A stretch of DNA of 63,177 nucleotides, filler included, from Lenisia limosa (Eukaryota > Protista > Breviatea), in assembly GCA_001655205.1 (NCBI GenBank). It is 14 parts of 14 records of this genome, joined end to end, with 100 filler letters (N's around TTAATTAATTAA, not from the genome) between each part and the next. Parts side by side here need not be neighbours in the genome. Positions count along the whole stretch, not along the records: positions 38,125 to 43,614 come from LPNZ01004310.1; 13 more parts are not named here. The stretch is one strand, 5' to 3'. A model generated the notes under the pieces. That model did no database searches. It saw only the letters and a program-made list of their open reading frames with translations, and was not told where the DNA came from. Position numbers and translations under genes: made by a program. This document shows positions 36,238 through 43,741 of this stretch, one piece after another (the stretch's first letter is position 1; each line of letters opens with the position of its first letter).

Positions 36238-38374
36238 TTATTTTGAAAATTTATCTCTCTTTATTTGGCATTCTTTTTAGTATTCCGCAGTAATATAGAG
36301 AAAACATTATTTCAACAAGTTTTGTTACCATCTGAGTCGCGTCCACAGCAAATTAGAACTCTTTAAGCCGGACTTTTCACTTCCCTGTCGCTTTGCTATC
36401 CAAAGTTGGACTGATGAAGCATTGAAATTGTGTATATATACATATGGTTTCCAACCAAATCGCCATCACAATTTGAGATGTTTGGGCTATCACTGGAAAC
36501 TCAAGGAAATACTTGTGAGTTCTTTACTTATAACTATTTAAGTCCAGATTTATTCAGCAAAGTGACAGGAAAGTGAAAAAGGAAGTAAAATTGGGGCTGT
36601 TTTATAGACGATACGACTCTACTGGTAATCATACTCGTTAGAATGGTTTTATACCCTTTTTATAACGGAATACTGTGAAGAATACCAAATTAGAGACAAG
36701 AAAAATTCCTAAAAACAATCATATGATGTCACATGATGTCACCTGATGTCAAAAAAAAAATCATGCCTGGTACCCCTCATCCCCTGGCTCAAAGAGCTCG
36801 AAGTCAAGTTTCAAAGGCAAGCAAAAGGCAAGGCACAAGAGGGGCCGCAGCCGCCACGGGGGGTCAATATTCTAAGCCTGGGGAAACATTTTTGGGTCTG
36901 GTTCGGTTTCAACCAAATCTATGGTGCACTTTTTTGAACCAGTTGTAAAAAGAAGCTTAAGTTGTGTTTATAGAATTGATTTTGAAAAATAGAGGGGTCT
37001 TCTACGAGTTCAAAAACAAGTGCACCTCATATTTTGACAAACCGGTTTCAGTCATCCTGTGGAGGGGGGGTTCAAGTCTCCCTGTGGCAGTTTTTTTTTC
37101 TTCTTCGAATTCTTTTATTTCAGTGAGAACAGCTTTTACTTCTTTTTGAGTCAACTGTAGATTATCCGAATAGATCGCAATAAGACAATTGAACATACTA
37201 AGATACTAACTTATGGTTAGAATCAACACTACCTCGAGATAAAAAGTGTAGCTCCTGCTACGAAAGTCTGATTTCTATTCCATCGCCTATAAAAATGTTC
37301 CCATTACCTTGAGATATTAATAACTACTACAAGTAGGTTTTGTTCTTTACATATTGAAGAGTACTACTATCTGAACCTTCTTTTTGTTGCCTTCAGCCAG
37401 ACCATTTTTATGTGCATTTTGACAAGAAAATCGGATGTATTAGAAGTAAAAAAGGATCATTCAGTCAATGAAACGAGAAAACGTAACAAAAACAAGAAAA
37501 TTGAATTAATGACTGTATTTAGGACCGTGAGCATATATACTCTATATATACAATATCTACTATATTTCATAATTTCGCTAATACTCTTCATAGAAATTCC
37601 CTTCGTTTTACTCCCCCCAACCTTTGTGGTCATTTCTACCTCATTCATCTCTATTCCGACGGAGTACCCATGTTCCCTTGCCTTCCCGACGAATTAACCT
37701 ACATGTATCGCGTGCTTCTGTTTGATCACTCTCTCCCAATACATGCAATGTCTCGAGAAGCAGCGTTGCAATTCCCGCAACAAAGTTTCGCGACGTCGGC
37801 AAGTGCATTCTGCAAAGTCTGCAGCTCGCAGGTGAATACCTCATACCTGAATGCGGTCAATATCCTAAACCTCTCTAAAATCACTGAGCCTTGAAAAAAC
37901 AAAACATCATTGGTATTTGAAAGCTGATATCTTCAAACGGAGTACTTCAGTTTTATTTATTTACTTTGCATTGCAATCGTACTTCTTTGTAGTATATATA
38001 TATATAGGTTGGTGTTGGAAACCGNNNNNNNNNNNNNNNNNNNNNNNNNNNNNNNNNNNNNNNNNNNNTTAATTAATTAANNNNNNNNNNNNNNNNNNNN
38101 NNNNNNNNNNNNNNNNNNNNNNNNGGGGGGGGACTTCCCAGCCGACTTTTCAAGGGGGGACAGCTTTTTTCCGAGATATTGGGTTTTTGTATAGTATTAA
38201 TTCACCCATATAATAATAGTACCTACAAACACAAACCTCAGGTGAAGGTAATTCAAGCATATATTATATACATACCATATATACACTCACCCTCAAAACC
38301 ATACCATTTACCCTACTACAAAAAATCCTCCTCACAACCTAGTTCTTCTATTCCACTCCACAACTCACACCAGG

Positions 38375-40393
38375 TTAGGCGCTGACGTCGTTTTTGGCGT
38401 ATTTAACGCGCGTGGCTGCGATGTAGTACTTGCCTGGCTTTTCCTCTTGCCAGCTGCCTCCTAAAACTCCCTGTTCACACTAAAAAAATAACTTCTGGCT
38501 TGGTTTATTGAGAGTTATCAAAGATCTATCGAGAAATTTGGGTTCTTTTCGTTGAAATTGACACCCCCTTCCCCCACAACCAACCCCCTAATATACATGT
38601 ATTTACAGCCAACAGAGTTGGTTTGAGCTTTTTTGTTTCATAAATTTTCCTATTTTACCCCCCCCCCCTCTCCCCCATACTGCAGCACATGTTAAAAACC
38701 TGGCTTTGCGATCCGTGGCAACGTGGGTGAAGCCCTAGGTTAATTATTTGTTTAAAGGTAAACTATACATAAAAAACAATATTACACTGCTGTAAATGGA
38801 AAGAAAATGGTACACTGGGTATATAATACATGTATTATATTAAGTATGAAATTGGACATTATGCACAATAAACTGACTGTGAAAAGTCTCGACACGGATA
38901 GTGAGCTTTATATTTAGTTAATCATGTCAGGACTTATCACAGTCTCTGTATATAGAGGTGAGAATAAAACAAGTGAGTATCTGACCAAGGTCTTAAAACA
39001 AAGCAAGGAATACGTAAGAAAAGGGAGTTGCATATTCTCACATCACACCACATTCTCAAAAGTCCCCCTCCATAAATATACATGTATCATATTTAATATT
39101 ATATCGGCCTTTCTCGAGAATATACCCCAGACACCATCCACCCCCCCCCCCCAAANNNNNNNNNNNNNNNNNNNNNNNNNNNNNNNNNNNNNNNNNNNNN
39201 NNNNNNNNNNNNNNNNNNNNNNNNNNNNNNNNNNNNNNNNNNNNNNNNNACGTTTTCGGCTGTTTTGGAAACCGGCAGGGTGATCTGCGAAATTAGAGAT
39301 TTAAATTTCGAAAATTAAATTCGCCTTCATTATCATATTCTTCCTCTCCTCCTCCACCTTCTCCATTATATTCCACACTTCCTCGTCCTGTCTTTTCTTC
39401 CTCAAAAAAACAAACAACGCCCAGACCAGTCGCTTCTGCAGCACCGCATCCATCAAAGGGTGATTGGAGGGGGGGTGGCACACTCTGGATACGTCTTTCT
39501 CGCTTCCGAACCATTCTTAGCTCTTTAACTTCTTTTCAATCTTCAATCTTCGGCAGCATCCTCTCTTCCATCAGTCTTCTTTTTACGTGGTTCCTCTAAC
39601 TCCTACTACTCCATATACCGCGTCTTCATTTATCTTCAGCGTTCTTCCTTCTTCCTTCTTCGTTCAATCTCAACTCCCTTTCTTTCTTCATCTTCTTCCT
39701 TCCTTTCTTCTCTTTCTTAAATAATTGCGAGCATTCATCCTTATCTCTATCTTCGAATAATTCCTTTCTTCTCTTTCTTCAAATAATTGCGGCAAGGACT
39801 TCTTTAGTCTTCCATCTTCTTCCTATCTTTCTTTTCAGCTTCTTCTCCTTTCTCCTATATGGTATTTTTCGGACTAGAGGGAAGCACTCTTCATCCAATA
39901 ATATCATCAAACACCCTCTCTTAGGCTTGAATTACATCATACCACCCCAATCTTTATACTCCAACTAGGGCATCACTTCGGTTCGAAAAAAGACTGAATT
40001 TCTCGATAAATCTTCGAAAAATATCGATATTTACCGGTATTTTCCGAACCGAAATGAACCACTAACTCCACCCTACGGTCCGAAGACCCGCAAAAAACCA
40101 ATATTTATCATGATTTATCAAAGAATTCAGCATGCTTGTGACCATAGGGAATCCCTAATCATACCTCCTCGTCGCTTGACACTGCCGCGCCTTCTTTAAA
40201 AATGATCGTTTCGCAGACCTTGCAGTAAGCTGAGGGATCAGGAGAGAGCAGTCACTTAAACACAATATAACAACAATAGTCTGGAAAATTAATGTTATTA
40301 AACAATTATTCTTTATCTGCTGTGGGTTAAGCAAATCGAGGGAGATCTCTCACCGTTTTTAGGATTCTTGCTGGCGTCGACAGGGGAGGTCAT
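38375..40393 (-). CDS. RABIF: Mss4/RABIF guanine-nucleotide-free Rab chaperone
   Basis: MTSPVDASKNPKN|AYCKVCETIIFKEGAAVSSDEE|ITLPVSKTAEN...gap...GFTHVATDRKARFLTCAA|CEQGVLGGSWQEEKPGKYYIAATRVKY...*: two CxxC zinc knuckles with Mss4 spacing. Confidence 0.8.
39966..40064. mobile_element. hAT-type MITE, subfamily A1, in an Mss4 intron; an A2 remnant is adjacent at 40070-40158
   Basis: TIRs present; TSD actccaac/actccacc. Confidence 0.88.
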
Positions 40394-41166
40394 TTTCGTC
40401 TGTTTTCCGATGTTAAAATGTAAACCTGTACAAGATCAAATGAATAAGAAGAATAAGGCTCTGAAGGAAACAAAAAGGTGCCAGATATCCTAGAATGTCC
40501 TTAAAAGGAACATTTGATTATGTAATCATACTTTCTAAATTCGTGTAGAACTGAATTGAACTGAACTCTAATGGTATTTAAGCTTTTTTTCGGGAGTTTT
40601 GGAGTTGTTGTTTTCTGTCTGGCTTGCTCTCGAAGCTTAAGGGTTTTTATGTATTGTATCTTCCCGTTTATTTGCCACGTGCATAGCTTTGGGGAAAGTC
40701 CTCGGACCATTGGGTAGAAAGTACCCCTCGTAATGACCTTATCGCTTGACCTGTAGTCGTGCCACGACGCGAAAGCTGAGCTTTTGGCTACTTGTTGGGT
40801 GTCATCGTCATAGCAAAGTCATGCAAGCGGCAGTTTTTACTGCTAACTCAACGGGGCTTACTGGCCGGAAACAACCATTTTTTTATTCCTTCTCTAAAAA
40901 TATCAAATTACAACATATATATATGCAAACTCGACGCGGAAGCGCGCATGGTGCACACATTCTGCATTTCTAAGTAACAAGAAAAAGTTTTTTCAAAAAG
41001 CAGCGCATTCATGTGATATATTCTCCTTGGACCATTGTTCTTGTTTGCCTTTGGTCTTTGTCTCATCAAATAAAACACAAAGACGCAAAGTGATTGAACG
41101 TCAACATCAGGAAACAGCTACATCTAATAACATATCAAAAACAGAAAGAACAGCCAAAAGGAGGTT

Positions 41167-41918
41167 CTAGAGAGTGATGACTTGGTAACCCTCTTCAAGG
41201 TACTTAGTAATGCCAGCATGACCATGCATATCTTCAAGGCGGTCCACATTGAGGGCCTAGAAGTGGGTCAAAATTGAGCAAATCTATTGTAGAGGTGGGA
41301 AACAAATATTGTCTTCCTCCTTCAAAAATATAAAGACCACGCAAGGTGAGCCAACCTCAGCCTTAGGAGTCATATCAGAGTCGGCAGCACCGCACCCCTT
41401 AGTAGCACCAGCACAAGTTCCGGCGATGACTCCAGAATCCTGGAAAAGTAAGGATCAGTTAGGGAATTGTTGGACGTAGGTCACTTAGTATAAACCTGCG
41501 AACGAAAATATATATATAAAAGATTTTTATTCCAAATGGCGTGTGAGAGGGAGGGGGAAGAGACTTACAAACGCAAAAAGAGTCAAACATGATGGAAAGT
41601 TCGACTTTCGCAGCCCTGCTTACAATAGCTTCTTTAAGTTGCTTGGCAAACCATTCACTGTCCCATCCAAAGCACTTGGTGGCAGCTCCTTCAAGGATCA
41701 CCTTGGCCTGGAGAAAATTTAGGAAAATAAGATGTTTAATTGTTACAACTGGCATTCGTTTGAATAATAATCAGATACCCATGTAAACAAGATCATTACA
41801 GGTTTGCCTATCCACATACGGTGTGTCCTTTAGCGACAAGATCTTTGGCATACCACAGAGCGTGGGCGAGACGGCATTGATCGTCAGAAAAAGCAACAAT
41901 AAGAACCTTAAGAGACAT
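41167..41918 (-). CDS. DsrE/DsrF-like protein, 118 aa, 4 exons (41918-41820, 41707-41624, 41439-41356, 41256-41167)
   Basis: MSLKVLIVAFSDDQCRLAHALWYAKDLVAKGHTAKVILEGAATKCFGWDSEWFAKQLKEAIDSGVIAGTCAGATKGCGAADSDMTPKAEALNVDRLEDMHGHAGITKYLEEGYQVITL*; KVILEGAATK, GTC and GH...KYLEEGYQVITL match prokaryotic DsrE-family proteins. Confidence 0.82.
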
Positions 41919-42163
41919 TTTGAGTGTTTTTGAGGAAAGTTGAAAAAAAATTGTTTAGGGGACTAATATTGAAGGGGGAAGGTAGAGAAATAACCTGGGG
42001 GTTCTAGAACTATCTAAACTATGTAAGTTGAGTTCTTCATGGATTTTTACCAGGCAATAAGTAGAAGTGAGAGAGGATATTTTATTAGAGAATAAAGTAA
42101 GGATTAGATCAAAGAAAATTTTTTACTCTGTTTTCTTCACAGTTTTCTGTTGTACGCCACAAA

Positions 42164-43397
42164 ATGGCTCCTGATAGCATTGATGTGGTTAAGCAGTACA
42201 AGCTGATGGCCGAAGAAGCTGAGAATATTGAGTTCATGGTGCGAGACAGTGGTCTATTATCAGGTGAGCGCTTGTGGGCCCTTCTTCTTCTCTCACCCCT
42301 TTTTTGTCCATATAACATCCTGAAAATAGAATTTTAACTCTTGTTACAACATAGGGTTGATGATCTTTCTGAAGGAGGAGGACAAAGAAGATGTCCGTAA
42401 GGCTGCTCTGGAGACTCTTCTGGTAAGCGTCAAGCTCAGATGATAGAAAAGAAAACGTTTTTTTTTTATGTTTTGGGTGATAGAAATATGGACACAGGAG
42501 GGTTCACCTCACTTCATATTCCAGCTTTGACAGACAGAATAACAGTTTCAACGAGATCTTCGACTGACCCCTCTCTTTCCAACTTTTTCTTCCCTTGTGC
42601 ATTAATCACTGCATCTCTTCATATTATCATTTCACATAGTATTATCATTTTTCATAATTATCTTCCCAGTTTTCTTCAACATATCATTTAACTCATATAA
42701 ATATTCTCATTTTGCTTCTTTGTTCACGATTTAGATGTTCGTCGCCAATGAAGATGGTAAAAGCATTATCCGAGAGCAAAGTAAGCCTGATATTCTTAAA
42801 GAGCAAGAGTTGATCACGATAAGTTTTCTCCTTGGGAAATCATTTTGCAAATCGGTCAAGACTTACCCTGGTCACTGTATATAATAAAATACTATATCAT
42901 ATCGAATATCATATGTAAAGGGACAGAAAAATAAACCAAAGGATCAGATAATTACATATAAGTGTGTCCATATATATTATGCTTTTTTTAGAACAATATA
43001 ACCATGAGGAGGGAGGGAGGGGAGGGGGGTAAATCTGACACTGAACCATTCTAAGNNNNNNNNNNNNNNNNNNNNNNNNNNNNNNNNNNNNNNNNNNNNN
43101 NNNNNNNNNAAATCCCGGCAATTCTTTACTCTTTGGGGGAAATATAGATTCCATTATTGGAAGCAGAGAAGTATTCTTTACAAGAAATTAAATTACAATA
43201 AAGGGATACAAAAGCAATACATAGATCAATACTATAAGTGTGACTAGAGAGCTTGGCTTTTGGGCTTCATAAATTTTCCAATTTACTCTTTTACAGGCGA
43301 GCTTGTTTCAGTTATCCGGCACGGAGCGACAAAGTTCAGCGGGGATCAAAAGGATTTGGCTCGGAACATTCTCCGCAAGCTTTTTGTTGAGGCCAAG
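42164..43397 (+). CDS. ARMC1: ARMC1-like armadillo-repeat protein, N-terminal part
   Basis: MAPDSIDVVKQYKLMAEEAENIEFMVRDSGLLSGLMIFLKEED...VRKAALETLL|MFVANEDGKSIIREQ...DQKDLARNILRKL resembles the ARMC1 N-terminus (DALSVVNQLRDLA...DQGCLPGLILF). Confidence 0.65.
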
Positions 43398-43741
43398 GTG
43401 CGGGGGGTTATTTACGATATGGGAAGGCACGCAGAAAGCTGTGTGCACAGAGTTGTAAGGCAAATGATTGGGTGCATTAATATTCTATAATCCAATATCT
43501 CTTATAAGCGTGATGGTGCTGACGGCTTCGGCCAGATACAACCATATTTTTTATTTCTCATTGCTGTATATGCATATCATATATGATATAATATATATTT
43601 ATGTGGGGGGGGGGNNNNNNNNNNNNNNNNNNNNNNNNNNNNNNNNNNNNNNNNNNNNTTAATTAATTAANNNNNNNNNNNNNNNNNNNNNNNNNNNNNN
43701 NNNNNNNNNNNNNNAAACGAAAAGCACTTCAACGAGCTTAC

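Follow-up and report, generated by a model that had tools for sequence, protein, structure and literature searches.

A spliced nuclear gene of Lenisia limosa whose product may be a very divergent relative of the DsrE-type sulfur carriers

Sulfur carriers of the DsrE/TusD/YchN type are regarded as prokaryotic equipment, and the suggestion that a gene of this kind is present in the breviate Lenisia limosa raises the questions of whether the locus is a genuine eukaryotic gene, whether its product has kinship with the DsrE family, and how it came to be there. The locus lies in a window of 63,177 nucleotides, this being the whole stretch of DNA that was analysed, composed of 14 parts of the assembly GCA_001655205.1 joined end to end; all positions are those of the window, and the part considered here (38,125 to 43,614) comes from LPNZ01004310.1. 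The original prediction, made from the sequence, was of a DsrE/DsrF-like gene that had been transferred laterally from an anaerobe and was domesticated in its present host.

Direct reading of the minus strand between 41918 and 41167 bears out the predicted complete ORF, in which the removal of three phase-0 GT-AG introns unites four exons (99, 84, 84, and 87 nt plus TAG) to encode a product of 118 residues (Table 1); the motifs that had been quoted for it, KVILEGAATK, GTC, and GH..KYLEEGYQVITL, are all present. Retention of any of the introns would bring a stop into the frame or shift it, so that the frame is open in the spliced form only. The G+C content is 46-56% in the exons and 32-40% in the introns, and intron 2 has a CTAAC sequence 22 nt upstream of its acceptor. 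RNA evidence was drawn from a polyA metatranscriptome library of a public study that contains the same DNA. A 244-nt contig from this library has the junctions 41256/41356 and 41439/41624 at the predicted sites with 0 mismatches, and since it skips 184 and 99 nt, introns 2 and 3 are seen to have been removed; it should be noted that these are assembled contigs and not reads, which establish that the spliced form exists and do not give its level. Exon 2 is represented in the contig by its last 21 nt, joined to exon 3; its first 63 nt, like exon 1 and intron 1, are covered by no polyA-RNA contig. The splicing that had been predicted is therefore documented in RNA for introns 2 and 3 but not for intron 1, and the model of exon 1 and intron 1 is based on the ATG, the strong donor and acceptor, and the likeness of exon 1 to the N termini of DsrE-family proteins. 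The locus is a genuine, expressed eukaryotic nuclear gene, the spliced form of which is found in polyA RNA.

Table 1. Features of the DsrE-like locus and of its immediate surroundings (window coordinates)
Feature	Position	Strand	Description
RNase MRP RNA gene	40608-40873	+	Rfam RF00030, full length, model 1-266, 111 bits (gathering score, 50)
3' UTR	41117-41166	-	at least 50 nt; RNA contig reaches 41117
Exon 4	41167-41256	-	29 codons + TAG, ALNVDRLEDMHGHAGITKYLEEGYQVITL; after cccacttctAG acceptor
Intron 3	41257-41355	-	99 nt, GTTGGC..TAG, phase 0, in-frame stop; skipped in polyA-RNA contig
Exon 3	41356-41439	-	28 codons, DSGVIAGTCAGATKGCGAADSDMTPKAE; after cttacttttccAG acceptor, before GTTGGC
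Intron 2	41440-41623	-	184 nt, GTAAGC..CAG, phase 0; skipped in polyA-RNA contig
Exon 2	41624-41707	-	28 codons, AKVILEGAATKCFGWDSEWFAKQLKEAI; after ttttctccAG acceptor, before GTAAGC
Intron 1	41708-41819	-	112 nt, GTATGT..CAG, phase 0; predicted from sequence
Exon 1	41820-41918	-	ATG, 33 codons, MSLKVLIVAFSDDQCRLAHALWYAKDLVAKGHT; before GTATGT donor
Head-to-head intergenic region	41919-42128		RNA contig of plus-strand neighbour begins at 42129

On its 3' side the gene converges with a gene for RNase MRP RNA, a molecule found only in eukaryotes, which lies 243 nt from its 3' end. The RNA gene has intact CR-I and CR-V elements, a TATA-like sequence, TATTTAAG, about 30 nt upstream (40574-40581), and a terminator-like run of seven T residues directly downstream (40878-40884). 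The removal of introns in polyA RNA and the fact that the contig also carries the RNase MRP RNA gene exclude prokaryotic contamination and place the DsrE-like gene in the host genome. Contamination had been judged improbable at the outset, and this judgment stands; the neighbors then invoked, Mss4 and an ARMC1-like gene, were not confirmed by Pfam scans of the flanking ORFs and single exons, and one ORF in the region supposed to contain them overlaps the RNase MRP RNA gene. The minus-strand ORF of 105 codons at 40504-40818, which overlaps that RNA gene, is probably not a gene. On the 5' side, a plus-strand neighbor is represented by a 975-nt polyA-RNA contig that starts at 42129 and spans 42129-42334 and beyond, with the ATG of its ORF at 42164. 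Because only about 210 nt separate the start of this neighbor from the start codon of the DsrE-like gene, the intervening region probably contains a promoter common to both, as judged from the spacing.

Several other features of this part of the window were recorded. Residues 24-57 of a plus-strand ORF at 43248-43487 weakly resemble CENP-X/MHF2 (E = 0.25 in a phmmer search of the PDB), with the match, KFSGDQKDLARNILRKLFVEAKVRG, at the same positions in the 81-residue protein; the ORF gave no Pfam match to CENP-X. The region 39300-39965 is a strongly C+T-rich tract of low complexity, with a GC skew to -0.57 and (TTCTTCC)x3.4 at 39642-39665; its long stop-free frames are compositional and are not genes. 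Runs of N are present near 39150-39260 and 43000-43100. The same locus is found in an independent metagenome assembly (ENA ERZ3820729, NODE_4202, 4031 nt), which by coordinate arithmetic extends about 390 nt past the high end of this part of the window.

The proteins of DsrE type with which the product was compared were E. coli YchN, TusB, TusC, and TusD, TusD from four other genera, plasmid-borne DsrE and DrsE_2 proteins, and 80 genomic DrsE_2 loci; all of the fetched DsrE family members are bacterial or archaeal, and a Sporosarcina DrsE_2 protein used as the query of a word-index search brought up only Bacillales proteins of 91-99% identity, adding no diversity. Family profiles were compared with the exons singly and in order, the queries being 28-33 residues in length. 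In hhalign, residues 1-33 of exon 1 align with residues 1-33 of TusD (alignment A4; P = 6.7e-5, probability 64%), with the Met residues and the GH pairs in register, and the score of exon 1 against TusD in hmmsearch --max, 6.0 bits at 4-32, is reached by about 0.3% of 300 shuffles. The hhalign comparison also places exon 1 on columns 5-33 of DrsE_2 (alignment A3; P = 9.3e-4) and on helix 1 of YchN at 22-29 (alignment A5; P = 0.008). The N-terminal strand-helix similarity of exon 1 is thus found in the same register in three DsrE subfamilies, ending in a common GH, and exon 1 is predicted to form strand 1 and helix 1 of a DsrE-like fold. Exon 4 scores 2.8 bits against columns 131-150 of the DrsE_2 profile in hmmsearch --max, a score that 0 of 300 shuffles exceeded; hhalign places it on columns 134-149 of DrsE_2 with P = 0.078, and gave no significant alignment of exon 4 with TusD. 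Exons 2 and 3, which are the expected place of the second strand and of the active site, gave no significant hhalign alignment on their own with DrsE_2, TusD, or YchN.

A joint test used dynamic programming to fit the four exons, kept separate, onto a profile in their order. The exon-chain score on DrsE_2 is 46.3 bits, as compared with 35.6 ± 3.2 for shuffled exons (p = 0.004), and p is 0.001 when fragments of real, unrelated proteins are used as decoys; for TusD, z is 3.1-3.2 (p = 0.005-0.0065), and for YchN it is 1.4 (p = 0.10). The sum of z over the three families, 7.93, lies above all 2000 of 2000 shuffles (p < 5e-4), these p values being somewhat optimistic because the profiles were picked after a first look. 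Exons 1 and 4 are the source of the colinear signal, with nothing specific from exons 2 and 3. In a pairwise version of the chain test, z is about 3.0 for TusD and 2-3 for the DrsE_2 seed, as against 1.18 or less for 39 unrelated control segments that include the flavodoxin-like NarL receiver; there was no signal in 9 of 11 single DsrE-type proteins. The DsrE-family match that had been anticipated therefore appears in the hhalign alignments of exon 1 with TusD, DrsE_2, and YchN and in the joint colinear test, but not in exon-wise Pfam scans, which were blank. Kinship of the 118-residue protein with the DsrE superfamily can be regarded as weakly to moderately supported by these sequence comparisons.

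The candidate active-site loop is encoded by exon 3, which contains Cys70 (41413-41415) and Cys77 (41392-41394); the product also has Cys15 and Cys45. The only columns that hhalign picks for exon 3 are those of the active-site cysteines (Cys78 of TusD, and CGTC of YchN against AGTC), with P values of 0.35-0.99, and its placement of AGTCA on the CGTC motif of YchN (columns 78-82; P = 0.35) is not significant. By eye, SGVIAGTC resembles HGVALNIC78 of TusD and QGVKLVAC120 of DrsE_2, and the Cys70 of GVIAGTC can be aligned with Cys78 of TusD, Cys120 of DrsE_2, and Cys81 of YchN. It had been proposed that the first cysteine of a CxxC-like pair was kept and the second replaced; one cysteine of the pair is indeed kept, but the situation is the other way round, since AGTC, relative to the CGTC of YchN, retains the second cysteine and has lost the first. 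The product does not conserve the RG found after the cysteine in YchN and TusD. Also absent are the DrsE_2 signatures TFxGLN (F-x-T-F-x-G-L-N) and CxMTMD, the columns of which are invariant in alignments A2 and A3; the product has ILEGAATK and CAGATK. Because these invariant motifs are missing, the protein is not a canonical DrsE_2 member (PF13686) in the narrow sense.

The origin of the gene has to be considered in the light of the search for closer relatives. A word-index search of 5.8 billion proteins of 54-171 residues with the 98-residue ORF that contains exon 2 returned only this ORF itself, which a single metagenome contig in ENA encodes; for exon 3 the query was the surrounding 56-residue stop-free stretch, with which none of the 5.8 billion had three 5-residue words in common. 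Exon 1, in an exhaustive phmmer search of 1.84 billion representatives at E <= 0.001, retrieved its own 36-residue ORF and two WD40 proteins. The WD40 matches (P0003 and P0004) are spurious, these being multi-repeat proteins that match through the repeat core, the VAFSPDGxRLASxSWD of which is mimicked by residues 8-23 of the product, VAFSDDQCRLAHALWY (41850-41897, minus strand). A P-loop of the LMW-PTP/ArsC type, suspected in exon 1 by eye, was likewise rejected, as it has the wrong spacing and no nucleophilic Cys. Eight-residue patterns from exon 3 were found in none of 185,579 prokaryotic species genomes, and those from exons 1 and 3 were not found in the JGI metagenomes. A literature search for eukaryotic DsrE-like genes gave nothing relevant. 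As judged with exons 1, 2, and 3, and within the reach of exon-sized queries, which detect only relatives above about 55-60% identity in the exon used, the gene has no close relative, prokaryotic or eukaryotic.

The account in which a DsrE/DrsE_2-family gene was transferred laterally from an anaerobic bacterium or archaeon, was then domesticated, and gained its introns draws on the fact that the fold family faintly matched here is, to our knowledge, known almost only from prokaryotes, which makes a prokaryotic source plausible; a spliced gene embedded in eukaryotic DNA is also in keeping with it. However, no donor-like sequence came to light among the prokaryotic species genomes, in the JGI metagenomes, among the proteins searched for three 5-residue words of exon 2 or 3, or among the representatives searched with exon 1, and an anaerobe as the donor has zero support. 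The gene is tightly packed, with a Pol III RNA gene on one side and a divergent neighbor on the other, and the composition of its exons and introns is typical of the locus. The three spliceosomal introns, the locus-typical composition, the tight packing, and the isolation of the gene together make a recent transfer from a sequenced or sampled donor unlikely; if the source was prokaryotic, the three introns and the lack of anything near exons 1, 2, and 3 point to an old transfer or to an unsampled lineage. Transfer from an anaerobe in the form originally proposed is considered rather unlikely; the candidate origins are an old transfer, an unsampled donor, and an old eukaryotic family.

Quite apart from its origin, the product might be a lineage-specific small alpha/beta protein that is unrelated to DsrE, its likeness to the family reflecting a generic strand-helix N terminus and chance. 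This would explain why no relatives were found anywhere that was searched, why the signal is confined to exon 1 and, weakly, exon 4, and why the signature motifs of the family are missing. It would also fit the blank exon-wise searches: Pfam and NCBIfam scans of the four exons singly gave 0 families at E <= 10, which says little for pieces of 28-33 residues; phmmer searches of the PDB with each of the four exons gave noise only; and in the ESM Atlas exons 1 and 3 matched unnamed short clusters with scores below 0.9. Similarly, exon 4 had no BLASTP match to YchN, tblastn with eight DsrE-type seeds against the genomic piece gave noise, and MAFFT merely stacked the four exons on YchN, with no scaffold alignment. 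On the other hand, chance does not readily account for the placing of exon 1 in the same register by three subfamily profiles with a best P of 6.7e-5, for a joint colinear score that surpasses 2000 shuffles, or for the absence of any comparable signal in the NarL receiver and the 38 other control segments, and an unrelated protein is considered unlikely.

Vertical inheritance within an old eukaryotic DsrE-like family that has been poorly sampled, with no transfer into this lineage, would agree with the long residence implied by three phase-0 introns, a normal composition, and a tight fit between nuclear genes. The own proteome of the source organism is missing from the protein collection, so that its relatives also appear to be unsampled. 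Nevertheless, the searches recovered no eukaryotic orthologue, at least above the limit of about 55-60% identity below which exon-sized queries are blind, and this reading is regarded as quite improbable. A start located elsewhere than in exon 1, such as the ATG at 41755 within intron 1, which opens the ORF 41459-41755 in the frame of exon 2, would be compatible with the lack of RNA coverage of exon 1 and intron 1 but is most improbable, given that exon 1 opens with an ATG and is followed by a consensus GTATGT donor, that the polypyrimidine-CAG acceptor of its intron is strong, and that this exon provides the best family signal, with its Met1 on Met1 of TusD.

The reading that is modestly favored is that the 118-residue product is a very divergent single-domain thiol protein of the DsrE/TusD/YchN (DsrEFH-like) fold that acts by a persulfide mechanism; the DsrE fold by itself, taken without the mechanism, is favored with somewhat greater confidence. 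In TusD and DsrE the active-site cysteine (Cys78 in each) carries a persulfide. By analogy, the product would be a small cytosolic thiol protein working like its bacterial relatives, in which the central strand, GVIAGTC, would end in Cys70 at the position of TusD Cys78 and YchN Cys81. A rhodanese, TusA, or a cysteine desulfurase might, for instance, donate a sulfane sulfur that Cys70 would bind as a persulfide and then hand on. Cys77, seven residues farther on in KGCG, could be a resolving cysteine or second ligand, a thiol that partners Cys70. Both the sulfur-carrier function and the partners are thus what we infer from the behavior of the better known proteins.

If this identification is true, one more prokaryote-type component of sulfur trafficking would be at work in a eukaryote, and the lack of near relatives would in addition suggest a branch of the DsrE family that has yet to be sampled. 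A more far-reaching version, that the gene founds an unsampled, eukaryote-borne DsrE branch whose own active-site loop, A-G-T-C70-x6-C77, replaces CxxC or C..RG, and that it was acquired anciently from prokaryotes and performs a sulfur or selenium step not yet described in the eukaryotic cytosol, is speculative and unlikely to hold as a whole. As this is a single small gene with a predicted function, the weight of the result is modest.

The known proteins of DsrE type resemble the product in different parts of the chain. TusD belongs, like DsrE, to PF02635 (DsrE/DsrF-like), the family containing the catalytic subunit of the TusBCD and DsrEFH sulfur relays. It is of similar size (128 residues versus 118), exon 1 corresponds to it residue for residue over TusD 1-33, as far as the GH at the end of helix 1, and the G-V-x4-C strand that leads to the cysteine can be matched by eye (HGVALNIC78 and SGVIAGTC70). 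However, the conserved AALRRG that follows the cysteine in TusD is missing from the loop of the product, exons 2-4 have no significant alignment with TusD, and the gene described here, unlike that of TusD, has spliceosomal introns; TusD also has the partners TusB, TusC, and TusE, whereas none are known for the present gene. The "DsrE family protein" of YchN type, represented by E. coli YchN and plasmid-borne relatives, is almost identical in length (117 versus 118 residues) and has LRLAxxL in helix 1 where the product has CRLAHAL; its invariant C-G-T-C is comparable with the A-G-T-C of the product, after which comes A..[KR]G, Ala taking the place of the first Cys of CxxC in the product. The invariant Asn9, Pro12-Tyr13-Gly14, and C-terminal DKVLxF of the YchN group are absent from the product, and the chain score as a whole does not reach significance (z = 1.4).

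Two adjacent DsrE family genes on plasmid pHMA411 of Haloarcula marismortui (locus L003, 3001-6369) adjoin yqeB and selD, which are selenium utilisation genes; some proteins of DsrE type are tied to the handling of selenium and not of sulfur.

PF13686 (DrsE_2), or "DsrE/DsrF/DrsH-like family protein," comprises 159-residue proteins encoded in cst-like sulfur operons of Bacillales. The product lacks an insertion of about 40 residues that is present in these proteins, together with their TFxGLN and CxMTMD. DrsE_2 is nevertheless the family with the best colinear profile score, and the likeness extends to both ends of the chain, the N-terminal strand-helix IILFSGD.. of DrsE_2 having its counterpart in LIVAFSDD.. 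and the C-terminal DG.E.AGV..YL in ED.HGHAGITKYL of the L. limosa protein.
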